DNA from: Penicillus capitatus
Taxonomy: Eukaryota; Plantae; Chlorophyta
Reading direction: 5' to 3'
Assembly: GCA_965649825.1 (NCBI GenBank)
Contig: OZ287698.1
Location: 1,565,949 to 1,629,948 of the forward strand
DNA: 64,000 nt
Shown: piece after piece, positions 23,671 through 51,800 of the stretch
How the letters are laid out: every line of letters begins with the position of its first letter
Numbering within the stretch: position 1 is the first letter of the stretch
Notes under the pieces: model-generated
What the model saw: the letters and a program-made list of their open reading frames with translations, nothing else
Told to the model about the DNA's origin: nothing
Database searches by the model: none
Made by a program: the position numbers and the translations under genes

Positions 23671-25365
23671 CTAGACCTGCAATCGCATTTGTGCCTTTTT
23701 TCGTCGTGGACGACTAATGAACGTGAAGAGGTATAAGGCGAACGCAACAATAGCGACACCTGTCACAGCTGCAGGGAAGTAGAGAGATGATGTCTCGAGT
23801 GGTCCCGTAAGTTGAAGGCGACTCTGACGGAAATTATCCGGTTTTATGTCACCCCTTGCCACAAAGACACGGCATCTTGTGTCGTTCAGAATTCTGTCGA
23901 GTCCCAGATGCAAACACCGTATCTTCTCCATTGCTTCCAGCCTCTGAGCATCAGACTGTGATATAACAAATGCATCTGCTTGAGAGTAGTTGCTCAAGCG
24001 TGAAAGGGAAGGGACATAGGGGCGACAGATCTCACACGAAGCTCGGCAATTCTCTCTCATGTACATCCATGTGTTGTCGCACTCTTGTCTTTGTCTCCAA
24101 TAGAGGCAGAACTCGTGATCATCGTGACAAATGACACCGGGAATGTGAAGATAAGCATAGACCTCATTCAATTCCTTCTCAATTTTGTCCACAACGACAC
24201 ATTGCTCCTCCACTGCTTCTTTCTGATCGATACAGCTACGCCGATGCCGTTCACACAATGCCTTGTTGATGATATTGACGACTTCAATGACCAGAAGCTG
24301 GCTGTATCTCTCTCTCGGCTCTTTTGATCGAACACTCTTCGGGTGGGGTGGATGCGGGAAGAGACCAAAGTCTTCGGCTGTCGATCTTTCCTCGCTCATG
24401 TTCCAGGGAGGACACCGTAGAGGATCGAAGTCGAAATGTTCATGTTTGTCGAAGGTGTAGTTGGCCACCTTGTGCTTAAGTCCATAGTGTACGATGATTG
24501 GAATGTCCTTTACGGCATATCCCGGATAGTATTCCACTGTTGTCTCGATCTTGTGTCGGATTCCGACTTTTGCAGCGGCAAAGGCATAACCATACATCTC
24601 CGAGATCCACGTCTTTCCGCCCTTTTGCACTGTTGGGTCTCCTGTCAGATTCCAGGCATCTGGATCTTCTCGAACGGCTTCGGTGTAACTCAGCCAAAGT
24701 GGAGCGATTTTGGCCAAATCTCGTGTCCTCAGTAAGAAAAAGCTTCCGGCTTCGTCTGCCCGTCTGCCCGATGGTCCACCGTAGTGATCTTCCTTTCGTG
24801 GTACGTCTGGTATGTGCCGATCTGCCAAAGCATTATTCACTCCCAAAAGGCGGTTGTAATGTGCGGACACAGCAAACCCCTCTGGGACTCCGAAGTCTTT
24901 TACGAGGAAGGGCTGCTTAAGTATCATGTCTGGATCCAAAATGAGAGTCCACTCAGCTGTCGGGAGTCGTTCTGCCAGCCAAAACATAATGGAGACAGGG
25001 CGATTGTAAGGCTGGTAGTGGTCTCCCGTAGTCGGATGCTGTTTCCAGTTGGGCACGACGAGGGTGTCCATAATGGCCAAGTCCTCGTCCGTCAGCTTCT
25101 CCTTGGCTTCATCCTCGTCGCAGCTGACGACTCGAGTGATCTTTCCAGGCTGCCCCACTTTGTCGAAGGTGTACTTCATCGCGAGAGCTTGGTAAACGAA
25201 GTACGAATTGAAACACTCTGTAGAAATGACCACATGAATCGCTCCCTTCTCGGACCCGATAATAGGGTCGTCTAAGATAGTCGGCAGCGCTCTTTCTTCG
25301 CTAGCACCGGCCAGGAAGATCCGTCCAATGAGGACAAAGTATGCGAGTATGAGCCAGTCTGGCAT
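23671..25365 (-). CDS. SERGT1: Peptidyl-serine alpha-galactosyltransferase (SERGT1/SGT1, HPAT-related) with ShKT domain and C-terminal TM; intronless, 564 aa
   Basis: Signal peptide; STECFNSYFVYQ, GQPGKITRVVSC, HPTTGDHYQPYNRP, LILDPDMIL, WISEMYGYAFAAA, IVHYGL; ShKT CHDDHEFCLYW...C...YMRENCRASCEIC. Confidence 0.85.
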   Translation of the reverse strand: MPDWLILAYFVLIGRIFLAGASEERALPTILDDPIIGSEKGAIHVVISTECFNSYFVYQALAMKYTFDKVGQPGKITRVVSCDEDEAKEKLTDEDLAIMDTLVVPNWKQHPTTGDHYQPYNRPVSIMFWLAERLPTAEWTLILDPDMILKQPFLVKDFGVPEGFAVSAHYNRLLGVNNALADRHIPDVPRKEDHYGGPSGRRADEAGSFFLLRTRDLAKIAPLWLSYTEAVREDPDAWNLTGDPTVQKGGKTWISEMYGYAFAAAKVGIRHKIETTVEYYPGYAVKDIPIIVHYGLKHKVANYTFDKHEHFDFDPLRCPPWNMSEERSTAEDFGLFPHPPHPKSVRSKEPRERYSQLLVIEVVNIINKALCERHRRSCIDQKEAVEEQCVVVDKIEKELNEVYAYLHIPGVICHDDHEFCLYWRQRQECDNTWMYMRENCRASCEICRPYVPSLSRLSNYSQADAFVISQSDAQRLEAMEKIRCLHLGLDRILNDTRCRVFVARGDIKPDNFRQSRLQLTGPLETSSLYFPAAVTGVAIVAFALYLFTFISRPRRKKAQMRLQV

Positions 25366-28219: not shown

Positions 28220-31200
28220 ATGACCGATCAACAACAGCGACTATGCGTTCTCTCGCTGCTGCTGATCGCATGCTGCGTTCACTGTGAATATGAAAAAATC
28301 CTGTGTGGCTGGCTTAACACATTGCATTCGAAGTATAGCATATTTTGCCGCTTGCAAGCTGATACGTGTCAATTTCCGGTATCGACCTCAAAATCATGAC
28401 TCCGACAATGACGATACAGATTATGCACTCGCAGCGACAAATCGCGAAGAGCTCACATTTCCTATTCTTTGATCTGTATGGCAATTGCAATTGGTTTCTC
28501 GGAACTCATATTGGATGATCTCCGAACTGTTGTCGTCAAATGCATCGTGCATGATTTCGAACGATGCCCATGTGTAGCACTAAGTCTTTCATTTCAACTC
28601 TTTTGTCAACAATAAATGAGGAATGAAAGGATGAATCTGTGAATGCTAACTAGAGTGTGACGTGCACGGTGATAAATGGTGTAACGTACTACGACCTTGA
28701 TCTAAGAGGAGAGCAGAACAATGGAACCATAGATCCGACACTGTCAGGCATAAAGACGCTGAGAAAACTGTAAGCCGGGTTCTCTGTTCCGTAGATGGCA
28801 ATGAATGCTTTTGTGCACTGCTCAGCCTGCTCTCGGGAAATAATTTCACAGGGGAATTGTCCAGTGCATGGAGCGAATGTCAGCATTTAGAGGAAATCGA
28901 CCTTTCCAACAACGCACTAAATGGAAGTCTCCCTGATTCATGGTCTTCGCTGACATCACTAAAAAACATGTGAGCAGTTAGCTGTTTGGCTGACTCGACC
29001 CTTTGAGTCATAATTTGAGCTCCTAGGGACCTTGGACGCAATGAACTTTCCGGAATGTTGCCGGCTTCTTGGGCTTCAATGTCTTCGATAAGGACAATGT
29101 GCGATCCTGATACTTGTTTGCAGACAACATCTTTTTCTCGTGTGACAATAGGAAACTGGGTAACAACGGTCTGACTGGTGAACTACCGAGCGAATGGTCT
29201 GCATGGACAAACATAGAGCAATTGATTCTGAACAACAACTCGCTTCATGGGCCATTACCAGACTCATGGTCGGCCTTCCATTCTATCAAAGAGATGGATG
29301 TGTCATACAATCAGCTGAACTCTACCATCCCGACATCGTGGGAATCTATGGCCGAAACGGCAGAGCAACTGTAACCCTATATACAGGTGAGCAGCATTGC
29401 TTCCGTGATGTGTTTTTGTGTGTAGCATCTTTGATGGCAATCCTAACCTCGTGTGCGCTGTGCCTTCTTTGTGGTCAACATCTGTCTTTTATTCTTGCAT
29501 TGGAACCATCGCACCGTTTCTTCTGTTGCCACCAGAAATTCCGTCAGAACCTGCAGCTGAGTCGAGCATTGCGGACACGCAAATGGAAATGCCATTGGAA
29601 TCCGTGCCCGAATCAAGCATTGCGGATCTGCTAACAGAAACACCATCGGAACCTGCAGCTGAGTCGAGCATTGTGGACACGCAAATGGAAATGCCATTGG
29701 AATCCGTGCCCGAATCAAGCATTGCGGATCTGCTAACAGAAACACCATCGGAACCTGCAGCTGCGTCGAGCATTGCGGATATGCAAATGGAAACACTGTC
29801 TAAACCTGCGTCTGAACCAAGCAATGAAGAATGGTCATTGGAATTGTCAACTGAAGAAAGTGGCGGCGACTATGTGTTGGACATTCCAACTCCTCCATCA
29901 TCTCCACCGATAGAAGATTTCACGGAATCTTCCGAGACCGTTTTCAATCCGCCACCAGGTGAGGTCCTGCTAATTTACAACGCAACCACAAAAGATCACT
30001 CTTGATGAATCCAGCAGCGTCTGAAGATGAATCAAGTTCAATTCCGGAGCCGGATCTCGGGCCAGAGAGCGGCAAAAGTAGCGTCTTGGAGGAATACAGC
30101 TTCTCAGGTGAGATGGCGCCAATCGAAGAACCGGTGCCCTCGCCCACCGACGAACCGGATACTGAAGAGCCACATGTTCCTGAACACAGCCTGCAATTCG
30201 CAACTTCACTCACAGATGAAGACATCCTTCGCACATACTGTTCAACCTCGGCTGCGAAATGTGAGCGAACTCCTACTGGAGTCTACGAAGAGATCATCGT
30301 TGGTGACACATATTCCCTCGGATCCAGTGTGCCGGGAGAGTCCCTTTACGGTCTCAAAAGAATCGACACTTCAGCTCCTACACACCCTGGAAGCCCTTTT
30401 GTGATTCGCGTTGTACCTGAGAGTCAGCAATGCGGCGAATCTTCACAGCTTCTTGTTGAGGTGGCAGTCGTCTGTCCGTCGAGCCGCTTCTACTGCGAAG
30501 AGGATGGGAACTTATTCTGCAGTCCAGCTGAGTTCTGTATCAATCTTCAGCTCGGTACAGAGGATTTGGATACACGCGACGACCTGTCAGTGACTAGCAA
30601 TGCTCCAGTCCTTCAGCTGAGGGGACCGGCGTCTGTCGAAGTCACGGTCGGTGACAACTACACTGCTTGTCTCCCATGTCTAGGACAGACAGATGAACGT
30701 GTCTGTGACGAAGGTGCTGATGCATGGGACAGCATAGAAGGAAATCTGACTGCCTTGGTCGAAGCCTGTTCGGAGGAGAGCAACGTCCATCACATCAATG
30801 AAGATGGACTTGAAGGATGCTTCATCGATACCTCCACCCCTGGAATCTACAACATCACTTTCTCAGTCGCGGACAGCGTCGGCCAATCTGTCAAAGCGAT
30901 TCGGCGACTGACGGTCCTTCCAGATTGCTCCGAAGGGGAATTCGTATGCATGGACGTGCTGCAATGCTCTGTACAGGGATCATGTTTTCTGCACACTGGG
31001 ACAGTCGCCAACACCCCCAGCGATGTGAATCTGGACGCCGTGGCCATCGAAGTCGAGCAACCAAACAACACAATGGATCTTGTCCTTACAGACTCCATAG
31101 GTCCCTTTGTCAACGTCTATGTCGGACAACCTTATGACAAGTGCGAGGAAGGAGTAGATCCGACCGATGATGTCAAGTGCGAACTGGGAGTCCGTCTTCG

Positions 31201-34200
31201 AATCTTTCCAGGTCAGGAGACGGACTACAGTGTCTACGCATGTCCCTCGAGTCCATGCATACACACCGGAGGAAGCTTCTGCGAGGGCTCTCTTTTTTCC
31301 CAGCACGGTCTCGCCAGCTGCAACATCGATCAATCTGCCATCCCTGGAACGCAGTACGAGATTCAATTCATGGCCATTCCCATGAATGCCTCCCTGCCAG
31401 TACTATTTGTAAGCCGTTATCTGGTCCTGGATAGCCCATGCGAAACAGATGCGTACTTCTGCCAAGACACTTGCTCTCCAGTTCCCTGTGATTACTTCGA
31501 CAAGCTTACGCGTGACACGTCTCCGCGTATGGTATCTCGTTTTCCAGATGGCCTCTCTTTTGCTTATGGCACTGCCATACCGATCTCGATCTTCTCCTGC
31601 ACCACAGATGCAGACTGCGGTGTGCGCGCAGAGGATGATGAGGGGGATGTCACTTCGAGCGTCACAGTCACCGAAACAACGCCTTGCGACAGAGAGCTGG
31701 GAACATGTCAGTATTGCCATCCGGATTATCTCGCTTCTGGAAACTGTCCTCCTGGATATTACAGATACCAATACATTGTCAAAGACTCTGCGCAGAACGC
31801 CGCCAAACCCGTAGACTTGGAGGTGAACATTGTCGAGTTCAGTGAATTGGTGATCAGTGTGGCTCATCGTTCTGCGAAAGAAAACATGACAGCATCTTTC
31901 TGGAGCGAGCAGCCAGCTCAGATATTGACCCTGAAGGAGAATCTGCTGGATGCACTGGCATCTGGGTTTGACGAAAGAGGAAGACAGGCCACGCTGAAGC
32001 CGGAGGATTTTAAAGTGACATATGCGGATAGCGGCGTCATGTACATTCGGACACATCTCGCTGGAATGGGCAAAACCATCTCTACCGTGAACCCTACTGA
32101 CGTGAGACTGTTAACGAATTTGAGCTTCTCTGCACATGCCCCCTTAATTTTCAATGGATCTGATGAGCACGATTCATTTTCTCGTCGGAAATTACTCCAG
32201 ACCAATGCGGGAAATGAAACGAGTTTCTACGAGACCGTTGCATCTGCAGCAGATATCCTGGATGCCTTGGATACCAGTCATTTGAACATACGTGTTCCTG
32301 AAGTACACGCCGAAATGCTGACGGATGAAGTGGATGATATGCTGAGCGCCATTGTATCAGTGTTGGGAGAGATCGGCATTCTTTACGAAGAATCCATTTC
32401 TCAGGTGGAGACTCTCATCGAATCCGTCGGTGCTTCTTTTCCCGACACATCCAAGGCAGAAAAACAGATCTTGAGCAATATCGAAGCCATGTTCAGCGCT
32501 CAGAACAATTACCACCAGTTTATCGAAGACAGACTCAATGACACAGAGTACTGGAACCTTGCCGGAACTCTTGAAGAAATGCTGAACGCCACACAATCGG
32601 CGACTAGACAGACAATGGCGATGATCAATGCACAGCTTCGGGAGATGAACCACATGAGAGACTATCAGGTGAGACCACAGTTCTTCGCTTTTCCTTCAGC
32701 TCCTACGTAAAGGGATTTGTTGAATTAATCAATTCGCTCTCGGAGGATCACAAATGCATCAATGGAACAGAAGAGCAGCGTTTTGCATTCACCCTACCAG
32801 TGAGCAGCCAGGAAGACCATGGCAGAAAGCTATTGCAAACTCGGAGCTCATCATACTCGGGTAGCGCTGTTTTGGGTTTGTCAGGGGCATCGGATGATGC
32901 GGAGAATATCTGGGGAGCATACAAACTGACAGTCCCAGATTTATCAGCCTCAGGTCCGAATGCAGCAACCATATCGATGGAAACGATGCTCAGGGGTGCA
33001 ACCAATAGTCGGAACTTCATTGTCGGCGGCGTCGTCATCCAGACGGAACGCAGTACAAAGAAGCACATCTGCCATGGTCGATTTGCCCATCTAATTGAGT
33101 ACTGTTACTCCATCCCACTACATGAAGTGGATCGATCGAGCATTCCCTATGGCAGAGATCCTGTCTTCCTCACAGACTCTGTCCTCTTCAATGAAGATGC
33201 CGCCACGCGCACGGCAAAGTACTATGACACCGATCAGCCTTCCGAGACAAGTACTTCGGGAATTCCTTATGGTTTTCAACCAAGCAACGAAGGAGTGACG
33301 ATGGGAACGCATTATGTCTATGTGGACACGCAGTTCGACCGAACAACAGCGACAAAGCTCTTGCAATACTTGACAGAGGGCAGATTTCTCGATGCCTCTA
33401 CCGATTCTGTCGTGGTGCGGTTTGTTACTTACAATCCTCAGTCTTCCCCCACGATTCTGGCTGTCAACGAAGTGCGGTGTATCTGGGGACAGTCAATCGA
33501 GTGCAAACACATGATCGATGCTCTGCCAGACATCCAATGGACGCAGTTATCCACCACTGCAACAACTGTCGTCGTTGCTCTCCTCGTCATCATGTACTGG
33601 ACGACCATCCTTCATGACATATCGTCTGGCACAAAAACAGGCGAGACCCTGTGAAGCCGATGGCTTAGCTCGATGCTGGTCTGATGCAGGCGACAGGAGT
33701 ATCACTGCTGGTCTGGCTCGCAACTCTGGAGACGTGTTCGTCGCTTCGATCATGACCGTCTCGTTCTGCATCACTCTGGGGATGATTGGATACGAAGTCT
33801 CCGATCTGGGACCACGACTGAGATTCGACGTCTATGACGCCAGCATTTTTCAAGGAGCACACTGGTTGCTGCATAAGAGAGAAGAGAGCCAAGGTATGAA
33901 CATCACAGCCCATGAACGGGGTCTTTCCCTGCGCATGGATCGTAGCTGTGTCGGGAGGAGAGAGATGGAAGCTGCCAGCCAACACGACAGACATACAACG
34001 CCTCTCCAAGTTCCTTCAGAGCATGTCCACATACCGGACGCTCACCTCCGTCGACGACGTCTTTCAAACGCTCTCCATCATCGCTGTGATTCTACGTTTG
34101 CTAGCGCTGGCCTCTTCTATCCCTCGTGTGTCCATCATCACTCAAACCCTCAAGAGATGTATCCAGCCACTCCTCTACTTCTTACTGCCATTTGCTGTCA

Positions 34201-35099
34201 TCCTGATCCAATTTGCAGCCATGGGGACCATCTGCTTCGGTCGACGCATTCAATCCCTTTCGTCCCTCGCCGCATCCTTGGAGACGGTTCTGGAATTCGT
34301 CTTCTTTGGAGGGGGAAGTGCGTCTTTCTCCCGCTGAAGTACAGAGTTCAGCCGGTGTATTTGTGTAGGTTTGATTAATGAGCTGACGCCAGATGGCATT
34401 CTGCTGCATCCAATGGAGAAGACTGTCGCCGTGCTCTTTAAAGTCTCGTTGACATATCTCTCGATCTTTATCTTCATCAATTTCGTCCTGGCAATTCTCG
34501 GCGACAGATTTCTTTATGAGAAGGAAGAACACCAAAAGAAGCAAGTCGTCAAGAACGCTGATCTCTCTTCCCTCGGAGCAGCGATCTGCAAAGCCTTCCA
34601 CCACATCCACCACAAACGAAAGAGCAGCCGTTCAGGTCAAGGGATCCCTAATCATGGTGATCTTAGAGATGTCATTCACAAAAGCCCTTCTTCAAGCAGA
34701 AAGCCGCCATTCTGTACATCTCTGCTCCCTCGTGCAATTCTTTCCTCCCCTTCTTCATCTGTCATCCAAGAACTGGAATTGACATTTCCACAGGTCATCG
34801 ATATCGATCAAAATGCAGATGACGCCGATGTATCGGAAGGAGATAGCATCGAGGACGATGATGACATTCAGTGCGCAATTCCAATGAAGAGTTTCAATGC
34901 TGCAGCATTTGGCATGAAAAAGCTCCAGGAAGACGAGATCGATCTCTCTGCCATATTGAGGCGACTGGAAGATCGCATGCGTTCAAGAATTCGAACCAAC
35001 AGCAAAGTGCGACAGTGGGCTATTCAAGCTCGGCTGGACCTATTACGCGTGGAATGGCGACAGCCAGAGTCTGTCAACATGTCCACATCATCTCAGTAG
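28220..35099 (+). CDS. Giant polycystin-like cation channel: signal peptide, plant-type LRRs, mucin-like repeats, Cys-linked Ig-like (DUF5011-type) domains, TOP domain and TM channel
   Basis: Signal MTDQQQRLCVLSLLLIACCVH (link to the LRR exons unresolved). LRRs such as LSNNALNGSLPDSW and LGNNGLTGELPSEW. Ig-like PVLQLRGPASVEV...IDTSTPGIYNITFSVADS. TOP NFIVGGVVIQTER and EGRFLDASTDSVVVRFVTYNP. S5 YFLLPFAVILIQFAAMGTICFG, S6 IFIFINFVLAILGDRF. Confidence 0.85.
29542..29793 (+). repeat. Coding tandem repeat, 102-bp unit (34 aa) x about 2.4, near-identical copies
   Basis: GAACCTGCAGCT recurs at 29547, 29649 and 29751. Unit is PSEPAAESSIADTQMEMPLESVPESSIADLLTET. Confidence 0.97.
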
Positions 35100-35422: not shown

Positions 35423-36032
35423 ATGAGCATGTCAGAGTTCCTACAAGCGCCGTTCGATGAGCTGTGGGAACCGGACGTCTCACGTCTGGGCCTTGACTGG
35501 ACTGCAGAGACGAGACCACTCACCTTCCATGCGGGAGAAGGCGCCGCGTCTAGGTACAGCTTTCGACCGCATGTGGATTTTGGTGCTATACACGCCTTGC
35601 AAGGCACATCTGTAAGGAGATCCTCGTTGTTCTCTGTCTCTCTTGACAATCGATTTGTCTTGCAGCGTCCTGCTGGTTATGGTTTTGGAATGTTTGATTT
35701 GATGCCACCGAACACCACAAGCCGTGTGACACGTGGTGTCCATCCTCGCGTTCTAAGACACATGAAAACGGTAGAGACAGCTCATTGTGTGCGCCTAAGA
35801 AAACTGTGTGGTGGTGGTTGCCCAGAGGAAGATAGGGAACAAGGACAACGTTAAAGAATGTCACATCTGCATGGAAGCCTTTCAGATCGGGAACCGTGCT
35901 ACAGAGCTTCCATGCAAGCATTTATTCTGTGGGCCATGCATTCGTGAGTGGCTGAAGAATAATGACACTTGTCCTGTCTGTCGGTACAAGTTTCCTGAAC
36001 GCCAGACATTTCTAACATCCAATCAAGAATGA
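35423..36032 (+). CDS. RING-H2 E3 ubiquitin ligase (small, C-terminal RING), 2 introns
   Basis: Spliced: GVHPRVLRHMKT|RKIGNKDNVKECHICMEAF...LPCKHLFCGPCIREWLKNNDTCPVCR. The ligand pattern C-C-C-H-C-C-C-C is C3HC4-like in a RING-H2-like context. Confidence 0.85.
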
Positions 36033-36646
36033 AGTCACTCTCTGTAGTCCTTCCTTGTTCTGCCTTTCAATAATGCAAAGCAAAGTCAACGTCGACAGCA
36101 TCAAAACTTCTTGGATTTCATCTCTAGAGACCGATGGGTTCTGATTCAAGTGTGAGGTGTGCGTCTATCTCACTCATGCGGCCATTGTTTCCCCTCGCTA
36201 GAGCGACCCATTCAGTTTTGCACCTGTTATCTGGCGCTGTTCATTCTTTGATGTTGCATATGGTGTTTAAACAGAATGTGATAGTGACGATGGTCATGTT
36301 GGTAGGGTGGCGGCGGTGGTGGCGGGTACAGCAATCTTAATTAATGCAGAATATCTTAAGTGACCATTCAAAGACAGAGGTATTTGTCCAGTCCCAGGAT
36401 AAACCCTTGTCCATTCAATATTCTTGTGTCGTTGCAAAATGTCACAAGATACAGATAGACATCTCCCTCCCTTTGACTAAGACAATTATTGTTTCTGCGA
36501 GACACCCATCTGTCTTCGTGAAATGACCCTTAGAGTCTGTCGATGGGACGTTCGCGACCAGTTGCGTGTTTTGCCCAGTCCAAGAGCACCATCACGACGG
36601 CGGACGTCAAACTCGATGCTCACCCGACACGCTTCATCGTCTTGCC

Positions 36647-37977
36647 ATGAACGACAGCACATCACAACCTGTTTCTGCCAATACGTTTCCAGGGGATCGT
36701 CCGTTTTCTTTGGACGTCCATCGAGCATTGGACATTGCTCGCAACCGACCCACGAACACCGTGGTGAGGTATTGACATGCCACTTGTTCATATGTCATCT
36801 ATCAATGGTGACCTCTTGCTGCTTCTCTTGCTGTTGCCGCTTAATAAGCCCGCCGCACTGTTGCGCTCTCAGTAAGTTTGTGTTTCCTATCAGGCCAAAC
36901 GACAAGGCTGTCAGCGCACGTCGCGGTCTGGAACGACGTGGAAGTCGAAGCACTTCGACGTTTCGAGGCGTGACGCACCATTGCCGAACGGGTCGATGGG
37001 AAGCGCATATCTGGGAAGATGGCAAGCAAGTTTACCTCGGGGGCTTCGACACTGAAGAGCAAGCGTCGGTTGCTTACGACATGGCAGCGCTCAGATGTCG
37101 AGGCGTCACTGCCATCACCAATTTCGATATCTCGAATTACGAACGAGAACTGGAACATCTTCACGAAGTGAGCGACCGACGGGCGGCCTTTCGCCTTACC
37201 ATTTTCGTTCGAGGTCTCGAAGATGGATCTGATCCTGTCGCTCAGAGAACAGAGCAAGTCAACGGCAAGGCGCCGAACGGCAAAAGTTCATCCGCGACGC
37301 ATAAGAGCGCCAAGGAGTTCTTCGAAGTATGCTTGCCTGTATGTTACGGGTCTGTTTGAGGCGATGGTGTGTCGAAAGAATCTCGGATGCCGAATGGGAT
37401 GCAGGCAATGACGCATCAGATTGGAACGACACCATTCTGGCATTTCGAAAAAGGACAATGACCACAACGGGCAAAAGAAAGGCGCGATCAGCCTCCTTTC
37501 TAATAACTGTACGCCATTTTTTTCTTCGCCGACACGAAAATGTGTAGCGTGCATAACGACGGGCGACAACGTCCTTCTGTAGAACGCCGAGGAAAACGAG
37601 ATTCGGGGCAAGTGTTCGACATGGAAGCTCTCTGCTTTCCTCGGAGAACAGGTCCATTTGAGAAACACCTTCCTGTTCGAACGGGTGTTCGACTGAGTCT
37701 GTCTGTATTGCAGGAGAATGGAGAGAAGGGCAAAGATGCGCGAACAGCAAAGGCGACTCCTTTCAAATCCCATTCGACACAGAACATTCGCACAAGTCTA
37801 AAGCGACCCTCGCTCGAAAGTCTCCAAGAAGAAGAAGAAGAAGACGGGGAAGACCTTATCTCGATGTTGAATTTTGACTTTTCCTATGGATGTCTGGACC
37901 CAATGGGCGACGACAAGATAGAAGTCGGCGGTTTTCTGAAGACCGACGACGACGATGACCTCGATTTTATTATCTAG
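36647..37977 (+). CDS. AP2-domain transcription factor (euAP2/WRI/ANT-like), single AP2 domain, acidic C-terminus; outer exons uncertain
   Basis: STFRGVTHHCRTGRWEAHIWEDGKQVYLGGFDTEEQASVAYDMAALRCRG...TNF, followed by the linker VSKMDLILSLREQS. Confidence 0.9.
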
Positions 37978-39856: not shown

Positions 39857-42800
39857 ATGCAGGAAATGGATTCGGAGACTGTCGCATCACCATCGACCAT
39901 CACTGTTGACCTATCTGCGGTTCATGAGGTGGTTGATACGGCTGTCGAATGCAGAGTGGCATTAACAGGTCGCCGTCAACAGGTCCTTACCTCAGAGACG
40001 GAAACAGGACATAGAGCCCATGATCTCCAGGGTTCAGAAAATGCCAACGGATCGGACGGCGTCGTGCGTGACCGAGTGAACGGCAAAGAAGGGATGGGTT
40101 GTTCCTCGGCTGATCTCAAAGACGTCGGAAACGAGCAACAGTCACTGCTCTACATGAAGTCAGTGAACAACTATATCTCTCTCCTCACTCTAGGGATCTG
40201 TGTTGTAAAGGAAAGTCGAGAGGTTTATTCAGTCGCCCGAGACAGAGGAGTTTGTCTACTTGGCAATGCAGCATCCGTCTTCTGACAACTATGACCCTTA
40301 TGCTCTGAGAGTTGTCCCATACAACGATCTACAGACAGACGATTTCTTCACGTTGAGTGCGCGCGGCGTTGCCAGATTTGTCGAGAATGAGACTCAGTTC
40401 TGGGATCTGCATCGCTGGAAACACGAAGTCGCTATATTTTACAAACTAAAAAACATCAGGCTGTTCAGAATCTTTGTCACGTGGAAGACATACAGGTGAG
40501 GATGTCTTCCACGCCAGTGATGTTGTTATCTGATGGACAATGATCAAACAGGATTTGGGGAAAGGCTGTGCGCGAAAAGAAAATGCTGAGAGCACGGAAG
40601 GCGCTTACGGACAACTATTTTCTTCTGGATACCCTGTTTCAACCATTCATGCTTCAGATCAGCGAACTCTGCCACGCTGTGAGTCATAAGAGGCTCTGTG
40701 AGATTCTACCGGAGAAATCGTATGAACTCACCGATCTCGTGTCGCAAATCCAATCATCAAAGGCTGCTGTCCAAGATGTAAGCACACCTGCCTGGCAATG
40801 CGTTTCATCTGGGTCTGTGAATGATATGCTAGTTCATTGAACAGTTTGCTGCCGATGCAACGAAGTCTGTTATCTGTGCGTGTACTGATGACATGTCGAG
40901 ACTGGACAAAAAACTCGAAGACTTCAAAGCTGCGAGGCTCGAGAGCGCATCTGATAGATCGCAGACCAAAGCATCTATGCTCAGAAAAAAACGCACTGTG
41001 GCTAGACCGGCGAACTCTACCACTGTCAGCGGCTCTGTCGGTCAAGGCAATGCTGAAAGAGAGGAGTTTGCATACACAATGGATGCCGCCAGACGGACAG
41101 AACAGAGAAAACTTGAGAGATTCATCAACATGGTGGATCTCAGGATGTGTGACGCTGTCTATGCGATTCTGAAATCTTCCATCCAGGTCACCGGCGCATT
41201 AAATCCTTCTCTTCTTTACGAATGTTTAAGGCAGACGCTCTGTGAAAAATGGCAATGCCGAACTACACCATTTCCCTTCCTGAAGCTTAAGGTCCTCATG
41301 GATGGAGCTTCGTTGTCTCCGCGGTTGGAACCCAATCTAGAAGACGCGCTGGTATAGAAATCATCTCAAGACTTAGGATGATGTTGGACTGATTGCCTCA
41401 AGGATGACACTGAGTGCATGTCATCGGCATTCGTAGATGCAGTTTCTTCTCTGAATCGATTACTGAGCGTGGACGGCGTCGTCAATTTTGTATCACAGAT
41501 CGAGAATACACGAGATCCTGAAGTGCTAACTGATGTTTTGCACTTCGAAGAGCATTCGAGAGAAAGAGAATGTCTTCTGCAATCTGTTAGGAATGCCTAC
41601 GCAGATGTTGCTTCCTTTGCAGAGCAACTTCAACCTTTCTGGCAAGTACCCCCCTTACGACATTCCTCAACACTTGCTCTTCTAGCGACGAGATCACTCG
41701 AGAGAAGGACGATGATCTGGATGCTGTTGTCGAATCATACAAAAACAGTCTCTGCTCTCCCGCTGCTGAGTCTGCAGTAAAAAACGGTGTGTCGTCAAGA
41801 ATGGTTTTTATGTGCCGCTAAGCTTCTTCTATTAGGCACAGACGAAGGACTACTGCTGCTTCGTAGAGTGCTTGTGGCATTCACGTCTCGACTGGAGTTG
41901 ATCGATTCTCTTGAAGATACTTGTGTCATCGGGCCCTTCCATATCAGTACAATGGCGCTTAAGGAGTCTTTGCGGCCATACCCATCTCGATCCCTAGCGA
42001 AGCTGAATCTGTCGATCCCTGCCACAGCTGGAGGTTAGACGACGACGCACAATTGACCTCAGCCTGCTTGATGTCCTTTCTAGAGCTGTTGATGCAGTTG
42101 GGCGATGACTTGCACATGGCAACCTCAAAATTGGAAGCCCCCGAAGAGAGTGCTGAAGAGTATGTATCGAAACTGAAGCATCTGGAAATCGTTGAAACGA
42201 GAACTGAAGAGTTTCACAAGCGCTATTCAGATATCCAACGCTTGTATGCTTTGATTGACGATTTTGGTCTGGAGGTGACTGAAATCGATCGTGCTGCTCT
42301 TCTAAATCTCGCAAACGAGTCTGCCTGCCTGATATCCGCCGCCAAAATGGTGAACGCGTCGAAAAAGAGCAAAATAGCAGGGTACATGACAGAGCTTGAA
42401 ACAAGCAAGAGTGGTTTAGGGAAGACAATTAACTGACAGACACACTTGATTCGTGTAGATTTTGAAGAACTCAATGTTCTCTGTGTCGAACAACAGACAG
42501 CAGTTGAAGATAGCATCTTCTTGAGTAACCAGGCAGATTATGAAGATATTGTGCCCAACCTTAAGGAGGCCGAAGAAAAGATAGATGCTGTACAGAAGAA
42601 AGCCAAATGCATCAATGCGATTCAGCAGTTTCTCGGAATTCCTCTGTCCTCGACAGAACAAGTGGAATGTGTTTCTTCGGCAGTCGCAATGCGATTGGAA
42701 CTCTGGATTGGAAAGAAGGACTTTGATGAAGAAACGGATGGCATCTACTCTCAGAATTTCCTCGAAGTGGATCTCGCCCACGTGGATGAACTCGTGGCAC

Positions 42801-45800
42801 AGAATTCCAGAACAGTAAACAGGCTGGAGAAAAATCTGCCAGAGAATGATCGCCTGCCGATGTTCCACGCTCGAGTGGAGCAGGTTAAGAAGCTGCTGCC
42901 GATCATAACCAGTCTCCAGAATCCAATGCTCAAACACAGACATTGGGAGAAAATCGATGACATGGTTGGAAGTCCTCTCAGCGAGAAAACCTTCTCCTTG
43001 GAAGATCTGATAGAGATGGGCATCTTGCGCTGGACTGATTGTCTTTCATCCATTGCTGCAGAGGCAAGTCAAGAAGCTTCTTTGGAACAGACCCTGCAGA
43101 AGATCATCGAGAAATGGTCGGAGACTGAGTTCATACTTCTCAATTACAAAGAATCCAAAGACACATACATACTGACTGGCGTCGATGACATCACTGCTCA
43201 GTTAGATGATAGTTTGCTGACAATGAACACCATATCTTCTTCGAGGTCGTGCTGTTAACCATGATCATGTTGTGGTGGAAGCTTCGCATCTCCAGGTATG
43301 TCACTGGTATTCAAGCAGAGGCGGATGACGTCGATTGTCAGTTGAGTCTATTCTCGGACACCTTGGAGGAATGGCTGACATGTCAGAGAAACTGGATGTA
43401 TTTGGAAAGCATCTTTTCGGCACCTGATATTCAACGACAACTACCATCGGAGGCTAAAGCATTCCATACAATCGATACACAGTTCAGAGAGATAATGAAG
43501 AAAACAAAAGAGAGACCCAATGCTCTGAAAGCAGCCACGACCCCAGGTATCTGCCAATGCTCTTCAAATGACGCAGATGGATTCTGTGGGTGTTTGTCAG
43601 GTCGTTTGGAGATTTTTCAATCCCACAACGAGATGCTGGAGAAAATCCAGAAGAATCTCGAAGATTACTTGGAAACAAAGAGAATCGCCTTTCCAAGATT
43701 CTACTTCTTATCGAACGACGAGCTGCTAGAAATCTTGGCAGAAACGAAGAATGTCCAGGCCGTGCAACCTCATATGGGGAAGTGCTTTGACGGGATTCGA
43801 AAACTCGAGTTCGGTGCAGATCCCGGAAGCATAAGCATTCTGTCGATGATATCAGGTCTCTTCAGATGCAAGGGTCTGTTGCAATGTTTACAGAGAACTG
43901 AATACAATAGGAGAGGGAGAAACCGTGTCACTCGGGAAGAATCTGAAGGCGAGAGGGAGTGTAGAGAAATGGCTAGGAGATGTTGAATCCAGAATGGTGA
44001 GTTCCTTGAAGAGATTAGCAAAGACTGCCTACCAATCCTACGCGGAATTGAAGCGGACGGAATGGCTGCTGCAACAGCCTGCACAGTTGGTTCTGACAAT
44101 CAGCCAGATACGTTGGTGCGAAGACGTCGAAAGAGCATTGGAGAGATCATCCCCAGAAGCGCTGGATGAATTTTACAAAGTCTGCAGGGAGTAGGTGATT
44201 TCGAAGAATCCATACACGTGTTGTGCTTATGTCAGGAAAATGTTGCACGGTTGGCAGATCTGACAACTGTTGTGAGAGGAGAACTGTCAGAACTGCATCG
44301 CAGAATAGTCTGTGCATTGATTACTATCGATGTCCATGCACGTGATATCGTGCATTACCTGCAAATGGAATGCACAAGCGATTGCCATCAGTTCCCTTGG
44401 CAGATGCAGCTGCGCTATTACTGGAATAGCAATGATGAAATCGTGGCACGACAAGTACATCGAACGCACGTCAATCTTGAGCCTCTTGACCATAAATCTA
44501 TCTAGGTGACAGCTTCCCACAAGTACGGCTATGAATATCTCGGGGCCCAGTCCAGACTGGTTGTTACTCCGATGACCGATCGATGCTATATGACACTCAT
44601 GGGCGCTCTTCAGCTGAAGCTTGGTGGATCTCCAGCGGGTCCTGCAGGTAACGCATACACTTACTTGTGCCAGAATCTATTGCCAAGCGATGCACTCTTT
44701 CCGCGAAGGAACTGGAAAGACAGAGACCGTGAAGGACTTGGCAAAGGGTTTAGGAACGAACTGTGTCGTGTTCAATTGCGGAGAGAATCTCGACTGCAAT
44801 TTCATGGGCAAGTTCTTCAGTGGTATTGCACAGTCAGGAGCGTGGGCGTGTCTGGACGAGTTCAATCGAATTGGTCTTGAAGTCTTGAGCGTTGTTGCCC
44901 AACAGCTATTGACAATTCAGAATGCTCTAAAAAGTAACATGCACGAATTCCACTTTGAAGGGAGATTTATCCGACTCATACCGTCCTGTGGCATCTTCAT
45001 CACCATGAACCCTGGATATGCCGGCCGAACGGAGCTGCCAGAGAACCTCAAAGCAAGTGGCACGTGTCCCGTGCTGTATATATATGATCCTTCTAGGCTC
45101 TCTTCCGTCCTGTTGCGATGATGGTACCAGACTATGCACTCGTGGCAGAAGTCATGCTGTACTCAGAGGGGTTTGCTGATTCAAAGAATCTCTCCAGGAA
45201 GATGGTCCAGCTCTATAAACTCTCCAGTGAGCAGTTGTCGCAGCAGGTATGATGTGGCAGATCGTCTCTGGTTCTTAATGCGTTTGAGGTGTATATCAGG
45301 ATCACTACGATTTCGGAATGCGGGCTCTGAAATCTGTTCTAGTAATGGCTGGGCGTCTCAAGAGAGCACATCCGGATTTGCAAGAGGACATTGTGCTTAT
45401 CCGAGCTATGCGAGACAGCAACATTCCAAAATTCCTCCAATCCGACGTCGAACTCTTCGAGGATATCATTTCCGATCTCTTTCCAAACGTTCATCTACCT
45501 GATCAGGCACGTAGGCATTCCCAAGGTTGCTCTTCCAAATCGTTATTCTTATTTCAGTCCTATGGAGAACTGGAGTCTACCATAAGAGCCGTTCTAAGCG
45601 AAAACAAGTTGAAAGCATCGGATGTTGTGGTCAACAAATCTCTTCAGCTCTTTGAGACACTACATGTCCGCTTCGGCGTTATGCTGGTCGGTCCTGCTGG
45701 AAGAGGCAAAACCACATGCTATAAGACACTGGCATCCGCTCTCACGCAGCTGAAGTCCACGGGAAACACACATTTTCGCGAAACGCATGTTTCAGTGCTG

Positions 45801-48800
45801 AATCCCAAGAGTGTCACGATGGGGGAACTGTACGGCGAATACAGTCCTTTGACGAATGAATGGACAGATGGACTCGCTTCGACTTTGATTCGAGCAGCCG
45901 TGAACGACACGTCTCCGGATTTCAAGTGGATCGTATTCGATGGACCAGTAGACGCGATCTGGGTAGAGAACATGAACACAGGTATCCACCTTCTTCAACA
46001 CACAGCTGTCAATCGCTTGTTGCAGTACTGGATGATAATATGACACTGTGTTTACCGAATGGCGAAAGAATCAAGTTGAATGGAGAGTCTATGCGGATGC
46101 TCTTTGAAGTGGAAGATCTGTCTGTTGCCTCTCCGGCGACTGTCAGCCGATGCGGTATGGTCTATGTGCCTGAAGAGAATGTAGGGTGGAAAGATAATCT
46201 GCACAAGTGGATGCAACACCCTTTTTTCGATCACCTCAATGACGAAACGAAGATGACGATCGGGCAGCTCTTCGAAGAATTTGTACCACAGGGACTTCGT
46301 TTTTGGAAAGAAGAGGTCGTCTTTTGCAGACGACTGATGCTGACGGATGCTTCTGTAGGGTGATGCTTACATACCTTCTGTGGAATACAATATGGTCTCG
46401 ACGCTTTGTGCTATGATGGAATCGCTGATGTTACAGAAAGACAAGACCGAGGTCTTGTTTCAGTCCACGGTTCAAGACAGCCTTCGAGCAATCAGGATGA
46501 CGTTTGCTTTTTGCTTCATCTGGTCTTTTGGCGGAAATCTCAAAGAACAGGCAAGAACGGCATTTGATGCGTTTGTTCGGGAAGCATTTCGGAAAAGTGT
46601 CCCTTTTCCAGGCAAGTTTTCGCATCTGTTTTTTCTTCTTGTTGATTCTTTTGCATCTTCTAGATCAATCATCCGTCTTCGATTTCTATGTGAAGATTGA
46701 TCACTCTTCAACTCGATTCGAGAACTGGGAAGTGGCTGTCCCAAAATTTGCGTATGATAATCGACTGTCGTTTTCTGAGATCTTGGTGCCCACGATAGAC
46801 ACTGTTCGCTTCTCCGCACTCCTGAGAATGTGCTTGGAAGTGGAGAAACCGGTTCTCTTCACTGGTAGGATACTTACTGCTTGCTATCTCGCGTTCAGCA
46901 TCTCATTCATTATGGCTCTACAGGAATGGCAGGTGCTGGGAAAACGGCGATTGTGAGAACTGCCCTGACTGGGACGCTGCATCGATGTCTTAATCTCTGG
47001 GCACGGACATCATCTGAAGATGTTCAACTGTTCATGGAGCAACACCTCGAGAAAAAGCGCAAAACAAAGTAATGAAACACGATGGATGACATGCACAGAC
47101 ACACACTACTCGCATACAGATTGGGTGCGCCGCCAAACAAGAGAATGATATTCTTTGTCGATGATGTGAATCTGCCGACCAAAGAGATCTATGGAGCACA
47201 GCCGCCAGTTGAGATGCTTCGTCAGTTTGAAGACTTCAAAGGGTTTTACGATCGAAAGAAGTTCTTTTGGAAAGACGTCGAGGACACAGTGCTCTGTGCT
47301 GCCTGCGCTCCACCTGGAGGAGGCCGCGAGTCTCTCCCTCAAAGATTCACTCGACACTTTGCTCTATTCTCCGTTCCTGTCCCTGGACGGCAATCCATGT
47401 TCTCCATCATCAGCAAGTTGTTGCGTGGGCACCTGAACGGCGCACAACTGCCAGATGAGAACTTGTTGGAAGGAGTGATTTGGTGCTGTATCGATGTTTA
47501 CCTACGGTAAGCCTTATCCGTATCTCAGCTGGATCACACATGCGATGGTACAGAATTTCGGAGGAGCTGATGCCAACCCCAGATCGCATGCATTACACGT
47601 TCAATTTCCGCGATCTCTCTCGAGTCGTACAAGGGATGCTGTTGTTGAGTGCGGATCAGTATCTGAATTCCCAGTCCTTCATCCACGTATGGATGCACGA
47701 GACATTCCGTGTCTTCCACGATCGCCTGATCGACAAAAAGGACAAGGACCATTTTCAACTGATCATCAACGATGTCGCAAATGCTGCTCTCCCAGCAGAA
47801 CTGCTCCCAGATGTCTCCTTCGAAACGCTTCTCTTTGGAGACTTCATGAAGGCTGGAAACGAAACACGTGAAGAAAGACAATACAAAGAAATCAGCGAAC
47901 CAGATGCCATAAATGCTGTCATGTATCAGCTCTTGGAGGACTACAATACGATTTATAACAAGAATCCCCTCGATCTGGTTTTCTTTGAAGATGCCATCAA
48001 GCACATTGCACGTTTGGCACGAGTTCTGAAGATTCCGGGAGGACATGCGATGCTTGTCGGAGTTGGTGGATCTGGAAAAATATCTACGGCAAAGTTTGCC
48101 ACTTTTGTCTCTGGCTGTCAGCCTTTCTCGATTGAAGTCACAAGGAATTATGGAAAAGCGGAATTCGGAGATGACCTCAGGAAACTCTGTAGACTGGCTG
48201 GAATCGAGAAGAAGCCGACAGTATTCATTCTTTCAGACACCCAGATCGTCAGCGAATCGTTTCTAGAGGAAACAAGCATGCTGCTCGCGACAGGAGAGGT
48301 CCGTCCATCGCTGTGCTCGTAGTTTGATTCCAATATGCACCACACTAGGTACCTGGCCTCTTCGAGGATGAAGAAAAGGACCAGATCATAAACGACATGC
48401 AGAGCTCAAATGATTCACAGTTTGCGACAATGACCAAAGAAGAATGTTTCTCTGCGTTTATTAAGGGAATCAAAGAGAATCTGCATATCGTGCTGACAAT
48501 GACACCAGCAGGGAGCGCCTTCAAGGAAAGGTGAGTATGGAACAACATGGAGCGCCTGCATGGTGCCATCAGGTGCCGGAGACTACCATCCTTGGTGAAC
48601 TGCTGTACGATTGATTGGTTTACCCCGTGGCCACGATCGGCACTGCTCTCTGTCAGCAACAAAGTCTTGGCAGACATGGAGAACATCGATGAGCAGCAGA
48701 AAATGCACTTGGCAGAGCTCTGTGTGGAAATCCACGAGTCTGTGGCAAGCGCAGCTGAGAAATTCTATCAGGAACTGCATCGGAGATACTACATATCTCC

Positions 48801-51800
48801 AAAGAGCTATTTAGATTTGATTCAGCTTTACAGATCTCTTCTTTCGAAGAAGAGGTAATCTGTGTCTGTGGATTGCACTTGAGTATCCATGATGTAGGTG
48901 TGAGTACAAAATGGCTCATGACAGATTGCTGAATGGACTAAAGAAGCTCCAAGAGTGTAATGTCACCGTTGCAGAAATGCAGAAAGAACTGAAAAAACTG
49001 GAACCCGTTCTGAAAGAACGCTCAGAATCAACGGCACAACTCGTGTTGAAGATCGCCGCAGATCAAGAAGAGGCTGAAAGAGTGAAGAGCATCATCGGTG
49101 CCGAAGAACTTGAAGTCAAGTCTATGCAAAGGGAGACGCAGGCGATTGCAGATGAAGCCAAGGCAGATCTGGAAGAGGCTCTTCCAGCACTGCAAGCAGC
49201 AGTTGACAGTCTTAAAGCCTTGAACAAGAATGATATCGTGGAGATCAAATCCTTTCCAAAGCCACCACCACTCGTCCAGATGACGATGGAAGCTGTTTGC
49301 ATTTTGAAGCAGGAGAAACCCGATTGGGACACATCAAAGAAGATTCTTGGCGATACGAACTTCATGAAGTCTCTAGAGGACTTTGACAAAGACAGGATTC
49401 CTGAATCTGTGATCAGAAGACTGAAGAAGTACATAGACGATCCGAGCTACCTCCCTGACATCGTCGGAAAGCAGTCTTTGGCGGCGAAGTCACTTTGTAT
49501 GTGGACAAGGGCAATGGATGTTTATCACAGGTGTGGCACGTGATGTTGCCAAATACCGAATGTCGTGGTTCAGGGTGGGCAAGATGGTCAAACCGAAGCA
49601 AGAGAAGCTGAAGGAGACAGAGGAAGCCTTGGAGAAAGCAAACGCGAAACTGCAAGAAAAACAGGCATCTCTAAAAGAAGTAGAAGATCGAGTGCAAAGT
49701 GCAATTCTGTCACTTGCTTGTCAGTGATTTTTGAATGGCAACCGTTTCAGATCTTCGTGATGAACTTGCCCAAGCAGAAAACGATCAGAAGCAGTTGAAA
49801 GAGCAAGCTGCTTTGACAGAACTGCGTCTTACGAGAGCAGGAAAGTTGACATCTGCGCTCGAGATTGAAGGACAGCGTTGGCAAGAAACGGCAACACAGA
49901 TCCAACAAGATACTGAGTTGCTTGTCGGCGACGTTTTTCTGGCAGCTGCTTGTGTGTCCTACGTTGGCGCTTTTACAGGTCCCTACAGGTGCCATCCGTC
50001 CCATCAGCATCTCCAAGGACACACGTTCTGTTCTGGTGGTCTAGGGAAGAACTCGTCAGACAGTGGATGGGTATGTGTCAAGAACATGGAGTGGCTGTTT
50101 CCTCAAAATTCGCTTTACGAAGCATACTGTCGTCAGCAATTGAAATCCGAGAGTGGAGTATATGTGGACTGCCATCAGACAGTGTTTCATGCGACAATGC
50201 AATCCTTGTCTGTCACACAAAGCGCTGGCCACTCTTGATCGACCCACAGGTGCCTTGCAATCGAACCCGCTTGTCTTCTCAGATGATGTAAACAGGAGCA
50301 AGCAAACACATGGATCAAAGCCCTGTCAGCCAGAGAAGGCCTTCGGGCAATCAAACGCACAGATGCGAACTTCCTAAGGGTGATTGAAAACAGTATTCGT
50401 GCCGGAAACCCAGTCCTCTTGGAAGATGTTGGCGAAGAACTGGATCCTTCTCTCGAACCTGTCCTGCAGAAATCAACATTCCTGAGAGATGGAAGACTGA
50501 TGATACGCCTGGGAGATACAGACGTGGATTATGACGAGGGATTTAGATTCTACATGACAACGAAACTGCCAAATCCTCATTACCTGCCGGAGACATGCAT
50601 CAAAGTTACGCTCATTAACTTCACCGTTACGATGAAGGCACGTCGTCTCTTTTGCCGATCCTACTGCATCTGTCACACTTCTGACAGGGCTTGGAGGATC
50701 AACTATTGAGTGAAGTGATCAGAAGAGAGCGTCCAGATCTGGAGGAACAAAGGGATCAATTAGTTGTGAGCATCTCGCAAGACAAACAGGAATTGAGTGC
50801 ACTGGAGGATCGCATCCTCATGCTCTTGAAAGAGAGTGAAGGCAACATCCTGGATGACGAACAACTGATTGACGTCCTCAACAACTCAAAGCAGACATCG
50901 AATACGATCAAAGTAAATATAAAGCAGTTGCCTCTCCCTTCAGCAAGGGTGTCTGTCAGGATCGTGTTCGAGATGCAGAAGTGACTGAGCGTTCCATCAA
51001 CGATACCCGGGAACTCTATCGTCCAGCTGCCGTGAGGGGTGCCGTGCTGTTCTTTGTGGTTGCAGACATGGCAGCCATCTCACCAATGTACCAGTATTCC
51101 TTGAGCTACTTCACAAGACTCTTCGTCCACTGCATTGATGCCAGTCCTGTCTCAGACAACGTCGCGGATCGACTAAAGAATCTGAACAGCTTTACGACGC
51201 AGTATTTATTCGAAAATGTTCAGCGGGGTTTGTTTGAAGACCACAAGACAATTTTCAGTTTTCTGATATGCACCAGCATTCTGAGACGATCTCATAGCGA
51301 AGAGATAACGGAGAAGGAATGGAGTCTCTTTACGAGAGGTGATGCTGTTGATGCAAAACGAATGTCACGAAGCTCGCGTTTCACCTTCGGCTGTAGGGAT
51401 CCCCGATATTCAGGATAGTCCTAAGCCTCCAAGCATGACATGGCTTTCTCAGCATGCCTGGAATTCCTTATCCCACTTGGACAAGCACCTCCATGCATTT
51501 CAAGGAATTCTGCAGAGCTTCCGGAAAGAACCTGATCAATGGAGAGCTTGGTACAGAACCGACACGTAAACGATGATCATATTCAGTGGCCATGTCTATA
51601 CTGTAGGATGACCTCGTCTAACTTGTACTCTGTTCCTTTACCGGCACATTGGTCCTCTTACCTCTCTCCGTTTCAAAGACTCATACTCGCGAAGATCATA
51701 AAGGCAGAGGATCTGCTTCGTTCCGTTATCGCTTTTATCTCAGAGATGCTGGGCAACGGATTCGTGGAGCCCAGTCCATGGAATTTGGATGACGTCTTTC

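Follow-up and report, generated by a model that had tools for sequence, protein, structure and literature searches.

A large LRR/Ig ectodomain joined to an S1-less PKD2-like domain in Penicillus capitatus, a probable SIP-dependent polycystin subunit of the MST3 type

Gene model and overall architecture

The 64,000-nt stretch of Penicillus capitatus DNA analysed here (contig OZ287698.1; "the window" denotes this whole stretch) contained a gene for a polycystin-like membrane protein on the forward strand at 28220–35099. In a comparative splice model, the gene was composed of 11 in-frame exons encoding 2044 residues, and every intron was of the GT–AG type. The ATG at 28220 and the stop codon at 35097–35099 were both the same as in an earlier model-made reading of this DNA (the sequence-only reading). 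The first intron was 275 nt long, and the remaining nine were 44–57 nt. The exon structure was derived by comparison with the orthologous loci L001 (81% identity) and L002 (39–46% identity) and with Caulerpa lentillifera, and the first intron and the predicted N-cap exon junction are the least certain parts of the model.

The product contained, in order, a predicted signal peptide, leucine-rich repeats (LRRs), a stalk, Ig-like modules, a helical region, the TOP (polycystin) domain, the membrane helices S2–S6, and a tail. The sequence-only reading had listed the same elements, with about seven plant-type LRRs, Cys-linked Ig-like repeats, and five membrane helices, and each was recovered in its place by the gene model, Pfam, AlphaFold2, or hydropathy. 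The N-terminus was outside, the ectodomain was continuous with the TOP domain, the chain crossed the membrane five times, and the tail was cytosolic, whereas S1 and, in the structural model, the S1-proximal TOP helices were absent. The product probably (about 0.65) belongs to the S1-less, SIP-dependent PKD2-like proteins of green algae, a family represented by Chlamydomonas MST3, and would work as a PKD1-like subunit of a PKD2-based heteromer.

Hydropathy was calculated by the Kyte–Doolittle (KD) method over 19 residues. Residues 1151–1880 were modelled by AlphaFold2 from a 39-row alignment of database proteins, with a mean predicted local distance difference test (pLDDT) value of 72.5. The features of the gene were as follows.

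28220..28285, + strand: predicted signal peptide, residues 1–22, MTDQQQRLCVLSLLLIACCVHC then EYEK; 13-residue hydrophobic core, V at -3 and C at -1 (read from the sequence)
28286..28671, + strand: Cys-containing LRR N-cap, residues 23–59, split by the 275-nt intron 28379–28653
28672..29477, + strand: seven 24-residue plant-type LRRs and C-terminal cap, residues 60–254; introns 28770–28825, 28970–29026, 29099–29151, and 29371–29425
29478..30187, + strand: acidic P/S/T/E-rich stalk, residues 255–472 (from the translation); intron 29959–30014
30188..31837, + strand: Cys-rich, mostly beta ectodomain with about four Ig-like modules, residues 473–1022 (PF16403 and Cys pattern)
31838..32668, + strand: juxta-TOP region with three long helices at its end, residues 1023–1299; exon end ...HMRDYQ
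32669..32712, + strand: 44-nt intron at the ectodomain/TOP junction, GT..AG in all three loci (44, 44, and 39 nt)
32713..33012, + strand: poorly conserved disordered linker, residues 1300–1399, at the site of S1 and the first TOP helices of canonical polycystins
33013..33540, + strand: TOP (polycystin) core, residues 1400–1575; beta-sheet, one packing helix, and conserved Cys pair
33541..33627, + strand: S2, residues 1576–1604; KD 1.95, AlphaFold2 helix 428–457
33725..33799, + strand: S3, residues 1622–1646, after intron 33651–33696 (kept in L001); KD 2.09, AlphaFold2 helix 472–498
33800..34061, + strand: long extracellular S3–S4 loop, residues 1647–1716, with an NTT sequon at residue 1690; intron 33894–33945
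34062..34241, + strand: S4, S4–S5 linker, and S5, residues 1717–1776 (PF08016 and PF00520); KD 2.04 and 2.16, AlphaFold2 helices 542–583 and 587–625
34242..34397, + strand: pore helices and filter position FFGGGS, residues 1777–1811 (family alignment); intron 34318–34368
34413..34511, + strand: S6, residues 1817–1849, with the canonical F..NF.LAI..D; KD 2.35, aligned with S6 of PKD2L1 and MST3
34512..35099, + strand: cytosolic tail, residues 1850–2044 (195 residues), with an acidic cluster and a C-terminal amphipathic helix VRQWAIQARLDLLR (read from the sequence)

The introns of the gene were very short and uniform, as in L002 (8748–8786 and 10189–10229; 39–41 nt), and the donors were mostly GTGAG or GTAAG. 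The intron 13896–13946 of L001 was a multiple of three and free of stop codons, and gene calls based on open reading frames (ORFs) run through it.

N-terminal ectodomain

The hydrophobic core at the N-terminus was composed of 13 residues in the window protein, 14 residues including a proline in L001, and 11 residues in L002, the N-terminus of which was MSRVFILIAYCAVVES followed by AYEN. The core was poorly conserved, and the residues at -3/-1 of the predicted cleavage sites were V/C or V/S. The core of L002 is too short to span the membrane. In that locus, the preceding gene ended only ~55 nt upstream of the ATG. An uncleaved signal anchor serving as S1, which would give a six-helix polycystin with an S1–S2 loop of 1550 residues, is scarcely credible. 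Green-lineage PKD2 proteins do have S1 300–900 residues upstream of the TOP core, but a core of 11–14 residues, unconserved and interrupted by Pro in L001, is a poor counterpart. Furthermore, it was followed by the LRR cap and not by the S1-proximal module W..DP.CGNGVCE..FGRFGC..DCG, a profile of which was negative on the window protein.

The LRR N-cap motif YE.ILC.WL...C...C.(W/F)..VTC was common to the window protein, L001, and L002, and the repeats matched the Pfam families LRR_8 (65 bits, 5e-18) and LRR_1 (60 bits, 1.3e-17). A weakly hydrophobic stretch behind the LRR cap (KD 1.45) might have been a concealed transmembrane helix, but this reading was rejected; the stretch was unconserved in L001 and L002, and would place the disulfide-rich region in the cytosol. 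The stalk contained a 102-bp tandem repeat at 29533–29793 (2.6 copies, 94% match by TRF), which encoded PSEPAAESSIADTQMEMPLESVPESSIADLLTET. The stalk of L001, at 81% identity, was shorter and had no such duplication, which makes the repeat a recent one and the stalk variable in length.

The Ig-like region gave a PF16403 match at 2e-9 and a weak second match, and its 32 Cys residues were invariant in four species. The Ig-like assignment was made from Pfam and the Cys pattern, while the AlphaFold2 model of this region was all-beta with a pLDDT of 52 (4-row alignment), too poor for a fold search. The 44 Cys residues before S2, together with 17 of the 19 N-glycosylation sequons, were consistent with an extracellular position. 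The three helices of the juxta-TOP region were located at residues 34–71, 76–107, and 111–160 of the modelled segment (pLDDT 55–73), and this helical region was kept in L001, L002, and Caulerpa.

Junction between the ectodomain and the TOP domain

In the window, L001, and L002, the ectodomain ORF ended in ...YQ followed by GT, and the next exon opened with GFVE.I..LSE.H.CI, long before any Met. The TOP-carrying exon of the window gene started at 32713 (GFVELINSLSE...). An acceptor at 32746 was dropped in favour of 32713, with the motif GFVE.I..LSE.H.CI coding in L001 and L002. Between the window and L001, the junction intron was 25% diverged, while the 58 nt of the upstream exon differed by a single, synonymous mismatch. 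The Caulerpa protein g3665.t1 (P0008, 54% identity) contained the helical region, the TOP domain, and S2 in one predicted protein with no transmembrane segment between them, and the region from TOP to the pore in L002 was a single uninterrupted frame of 472 codons. The predicted continuity of the ectodomain with the TOP domain in one chain, proposed by the sequence-only reading, is supported by the retention of YQ/GFVE across an intron of 39–44 nt in three species and by the Caulerpa protein spanning the junction.

The earlier observation that no membrane-spanning stretch separated the ectodomain from TOP was also confirmed. No hydrophobic segment of the window protein between the signal peptide and S2 was above KD 1.45, and no S1 was found before TOP in L001, L002, or Caulerpa P0008 either. 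The gap of only 44 nt at the junction leaves no room for an exon encoding S1. The linker before TOP showed pLDDT values below 50 at model residues 158–238 (~80 residues), without helices. Its length differed between the window protein (~100 residues) and L002 (~50 residues), and it contained no hydrophobic peak.

A gene-model artefact, in which an S1 exon was overlooked or the ectodomain and the channel belong to two genes, is very improbable. The exon structure is predicted, the junction intron is unusually short, and the Caulerpa models g9198 and g3665 split the locus, which would speak for such an error; the split, however, lies elsewhere, and g3665.t1 crosses the junction. A gap of 44 nt cannot hold a helix, and the other short introns of the gene were of similar length (46–57 nt). 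In addition, the frame and the peptide were kept on both sides in three species, with no Met near the start of the TOP exon.

TOP domain, membrane helices, and pore

The TOP core was modelled with a pLDDT of ~90 and matched the TOP domain of MST3 in phmmer at 5.7e-8, while the Pfam family PF20519 was sub-threshold on it (17.7–19.7 bits). PKD_channel (PF08016) scored 44.7 bits on the window protein. The AlphaFold2 model was composed of three helices, ~80 disordered residues, the first TOP strand, and five membrane helices, with pLDDT values of ~85–95 across the TOP and membrane parts. In Foldseek, it was matched to PKD2L1, PKD2, and PKD1L3 with a probability of 1.0 and E values of ~5e-11. Of the checks proposed with the sequence-only reading, the profile searches returned PF08016, PF16403, and LRR_8 at the scores given above and PF20519 below threshold, and the monomer model compared with PKD2 contained the TOP core and five transmembrane helices.

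Hydropathy analysis showed only five strong peaks (KD 1.95–2.35), all past TOP, which corresponded to S2–S6. The S3–S4 loop, put at about 55 residues and called unusually long in the sequence-only reading, was indeed long, at ~70 residues including a pre-S4 helix. However, it was not peculiar to this gene. The motifs RWKLP and RFDVY in the loop (RWxLP and RYxVY in the family) were common to MST3 and the family consensus, which makes the long loop a family trait.

In the family alignment, the filter was FFGGG in the clade of the window protein and FFGE in L002, and most relatives had LGD or LGE. The degenerate filter fits an auxiliary or odd subunit better than a homotetrameric pore. S6, on the other hand, kept F..NF.LAI..D, which makes some pore contribution plausible, and with the acidic filter residue of L002, a conducting role of the window protein, even a homomeric one, is conceivable. 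The amphipathic helix of the tail was kept in L002 as IRLWIMQAQCSLIR, and no Pfam family was found in the cytosolic tail.

Relationship to MST3 and the wider family

The best match among all PDB chains was 9B4H chain X, the Chlamydomonas MST3 protein of 8572 residues (phmmer, E 3.2e-20). This match spanned the TOP core and the S3–S4 loop through S6, and was followed by PKD2L1 at 1e-6 and PKD2 at ~4e-4. The PKD domain of MST3 is without S1, a pair of helices packed against the TOP sheet, and the Ig-like domain (Huang et al., Cell 2024, PMC11015965). The missing S1 and both TOP helices come in trans from SIP, a single-pass protein, and the fold is completed with SIP in AlphaFold-Multimer (PMC11015965). 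MST3, SIP, and PKD2 were mutually dependent in cilia by genetic and proteomic evidence, and a channel of 3:1 PKD2:(MST3+SIP) was proposed (PMC11015965). Seven more C. reinhardtii proteins have a large ectodomain and an incomplete PKD domain, the listed domains including LRR, SRCR, SEA, and C-type lectin (PMC11015965). SIP genes have been reported from diverse Chlorophyta, and SIP resembles the S1/two-helix/Ig-like part of PKD2 (PMC10846610).

The window protein had the characters of the MST3 type: a TOP core and S2–S6 with a pore loop, no S1, and a predicted signal peptide with a large ectodomain, and the two S1-proximal TOP helices were missing from the structural model. It corresponded to neither a canonical six-helix PKD2, an 11-helix polycystin-1, nor a plant LRR receptor-like kinase (RLK) or receptor-like protein (RLP). 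The sequence-only reading had presented the arrangement as a third polycystin architecture. That claim to novelty did not survive, since the same S1-less design was already published for MST3 and the seven other proteins (PMC11015965) and MST3 was the best PDB match by sequence.

The orthologous loci L001 and L002 showed the gene order of the window, and the layout of the protein was conserved in three other algae (L001, L002, and Caulerpa lentillifera). Caulerpa was the closest named relative, with an identity of 45–54%, while the proteins found in Bryopsis sp. KO-2023 were paralogues (~28–30%). The Caulerpa orthologue was split into g9198.t1 (P0004) and g3665.t1 (P0008), which overlapped by an identical 17 residues, MEVNIIELAEIEWSVEK. 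Both models were partial; g9198.t1 was without the LRRs or a signal peptide, and g3665.t1 ended after S2. The full architecture is therefore concealed in the public annotation. No literature on polycystins in Bryopsidales was found.

Word-indexed homologue searches, with the ectodomain plus channel or with the channel alone, returned only fragmentary ORFs from the orthologous loci and from Caulerpa, and the family was seen through a full HMMER scan. When the TOP-to-S6 region was scanned against 1.84 billion representatives, 610 proteins were matched at E<=1e-3, including 176 at E<=1e-10. Among the 150 matches listed, 89 had at least 200 residues ahead of the TOP core. In only 2 of these 89 (14 at a lax threshold) did the 170 residues upstream of TOP contain a strongly hydrophobic segment, and the others had none or one far upstream. 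The named members without a nearby S1 among the matches listed were from Bryopsis sp. KO-2023, Myrmecia bisecta, Astrephomene, Edaphochlamys, Cymbomonas, and the streptophyte Closterium, and were annotated only as hypothetical or as "polycystin cation channel domain-containing".

A second subgroup (Mesostigma, Mesotaenium, Tetraselmis, and Palpitomonas) looks like PKD2 proper: S1 was present, followed by two helices, the CGNGVCE/Ig-like module, and then a long insert that led up to the TOP core. In the PKD2-like proteins P0061, P0097, P0029, P0148, and P0138, from the green lineage and Palpitomonas, the strongly conserved post-S1 module W..DP.CG(N/D)G.CE.P.E(F/Y)..(F/Y)G.(F)GC..DCG was followed by an Ig-like domain, and hundreds of residues lay between the module and the TOP core. 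This post-S1 N-terminal module of green-lineage PKD2 appears to be the counterpart of SIP. A profile of S1, the TOP helices, and the Cys/Ig module detected 35 of 149 family representatives and scored negative on the window protein and its orthologues.

Proposed role in a heteromeric channel

By analogy with MST3, the window protein most likely does not form a one-chain channel but would serve a heteromeric polycystin channel as its PKD1-like subunit, in the role of receptor or anchor. In this arrangement, the signal peptide would be cleaved to leave the N-terminus extracellular, and the ectodomain of ~1550 residues, with LRRs, glycosylated stalk, disulfide-rich Ig-like modules, and helices, would run into the TOP beta-core and then S2–S6. 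S1 and the TOP helices would be contributed in trans by a single-pass, SIP-like protein from another locus of the genome, as expected from the homology with MST3. The completed subunit could then take one of the four positions of the channel, with canonical PKD2 probably in the other three, as in the homologous complex. Like animal PKD1, it may act in reception, adhesion, or anchoring, and link the LRR/Ig ectodomain, under mechanical load or in contact with an extracellular ligand, to the PKD2-based cation channel. The Chlamydomonas proteins would place it in flagellar membranes, possibly in the gametes of the siphonous alga.

The sequence-only reading had proposed that the signal peptide replaces S1 and gives a one-chain, receptor-gated channel. 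This part of it was not supported: in the described family, S1 is obtained in trans from SIP (PMC11015965), and the FFGGG filter fits an auxiliary subunit better. An autonomous polycystin of five helices, with S1 made dispensable by the signal peptide and four copies forming a partner-free, receptor-gated cation channel, is judged improbable. S1 was absent in four species, S5, the pore helices, and S6 were well conserved with a canonical S6 motif, and the long pre-TOP helices could conceivably pack in place of the missing TOP helices. However, these helices were connected to TOP by a disordered linker of variable length, and the acidic filter residue was missing in most of the clade of the window protein. 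Moreover, the closest characterised relative, MST3, needs SIP to finish its fold and PKD2 to reach cilia (PMC11015965), and the solved channels returned by Foldseek offer no precedent for a voltage-sensor-like bundle of three helices that leaves its S1 face exposed. A more specific form of this idea, in which an S1-less subunit of a siphonous alga without a SIP-like partner uses the upstream helical bundle in place of the TOP helices to form a five-helix ligand- or force-gated channel, is improbable. It is likelier, and a weaker novelty than a partner-free channel, that the split polycystin is an ancient receptor platform of the whole green lineage with LRR-type sensors, reaching the streptophyte Closterium.

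The demonstrated role of MST3 is the tethering of the mastigoneme (PMC11015965). Together with the degenerate filter of the window protein, it points to the alternative that the PKD-like domain is a membrane anchor only, which tethers an LRR/Ig adhesin or coat component to the PKD2 complex or the membrane with no role in conduction or gating. This appears unlikely, as the pore helices, the S6 gate motif, and the S4–S5 linker were kept in orthologues of 39–46% identity, which indicates constraint beyond anchoring.

Several observations weigh against a SIP-dependent, PKD1-like subunit. S6 retained the canonical gate motif, and L002 retained the acidic filter residue. A profile search for SIP-like proteins with the S1/TOP-helix/Ig module gave only two matches, both in other taxa, and no SIP-like sequence was found by tblastn in the 64-kb window, L001, or L002. 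The 44-nt junction intron and the 275-nt first intron were placed by comparative inference, and the window protein was without the long polyproline helices of most Chlamydomonas members. One match of the SIP search, P0156, was a 337-residue MMETSP transcript of the post-S1 module alone, which looks either SIP-like or truncated. The names Caulerpa, Ostreobium, Bryopsis, and Ulva did not occur in the text of the supplementary table on SIP.

Genomic neighbourhood

The window was nuclear DNA of a green alga, with neighbouring ORFs for DXP synthase, an AP2-domain protein, hydroxyproline O-arabinosyltransferase (HPAT), and a dynein heavy chain. The AP2-domain ORF (36523–37359, + strand), a near-complete DXP synthase (61105–63198, - strand), and a protein kinase ORF (12032–14326, - strand) are typical nuclear genes of the green lineage and support this placement. 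At 42446–53209 (+ strand) lay several dynein heavy chain exons (DHC_N2, AAA lid, D6, and C-terminal domain), which indicate that flagella are built, or a cytoplasmic dynein is present, in this organism. A dynein heavy chain was also found downstream in L001, in conserved synteny. A small RING-H2 finger ORF (CHICMEAF...CPVCR) was located at 35808–36032 (+ strand), ~700 nt past the polycystin stop codon. Upstream of the polycystin gene, an HPAT gene with an ShK domain was located at 23671–25365 (- strand), and the same neighbour was present in L001 (3559–5253, - strand). The stalk of the polycystin has SPP/PPP motifs of the kind modified by HPAT, which makes this neighbour notable, but the proximity may be a coincidence.

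Comparison with known systems

The window protein adds a new member, from an algal lineage new to the group and with a distinct LRR/Ig ectodomain, to the known family of S1-less, SIP-type polycystins. MST3 (Cre06.g309951) and the seven SIP-binders shared with it a signal peptide, a large extracellular N-terminus, and a PKD2-like domain that begins at the TOP beta-core and contains S2–S6 only, and LRR and Ig-like modules also occur in the Chlamydomonas set. The ectodomain of the window protein was built differently from that of MST3, with seven LRRs, a stalk of acidic tandem repeats, four Cys-rich modules of the PF16403 kind, and the helical region, and contained none of the polyproline repeats or C-type lectins. 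The protein also came from another green-algal class and had the filter FFGGG, and its partners are predicted by homology.

The split-polycystin design is thus not an oddity of Chlamydomonas. It now extends to a Bryopsidales-like, siphonous green alga, where the LRR/Ig ectodomain is receptor-like, besides relatives already annotated in Trebouxiophyceae, Volvocales, prasinophytes, and one streptophyte alga. This bears on the question raised by Huang et al. (PMC11015965) of whether N-termini are commonly flipped by splitting a membrane fold. As a compact, non-polyproline member of 2044 residues, the protein could be easier than MST3 to express for the study of a trans-supplied S1. Such expression could inform how the S1 completes the voltage-sensor-like domain in trans, and how PKD1-like subunits couple their ectodomains to PKD2.

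Canonical PKD2/TRPP2 proteins, including those of green algae, had the TOP fold, S2–S6, the S4–S5 linker, and the S6 motif in common with the window protein. However, the N-terminus of PKD2 is cytosolic, S1 and the TOP helices belong to its own chain, and green-lineage PKD2 adds the CGNGVCE/Ig-like module and a long insert. Plant LRR-RLKs and LRR-RLPs also have a signal peptide, Cys-capped 24-residue LRRs, and an acidic or Pro-rich juxtamembrane stalk, but end in a single transmembrane helix with or without a kinase, whereas the output domain of the window protein was of the polycystin channel type and no kinase domain was found in the gene by Pfam.

In animal PKD1 and PKD1L proteins, a large ectodomain with LRR and Ig-like domains is likewise joined to a polycystin TOP/pore domain with a non-canonical pore lining. 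Unlike the window protein, animal PKD1 uses five extra helices to put its N-terminus outside (11 transmembrane helices), keeps its own S1, and has the GAIN/GPS, REJ, and PLAT domains, none of which was matched by Pfam on any exon product of the window gene. The LRRs also differed, those of the window protein being of the 24-residue plant type. Like animal PKD1 in the 1:3 PKD1–PKD2 complex, the window protein is likely to be the one odd member of a tetramer built on PKD2.

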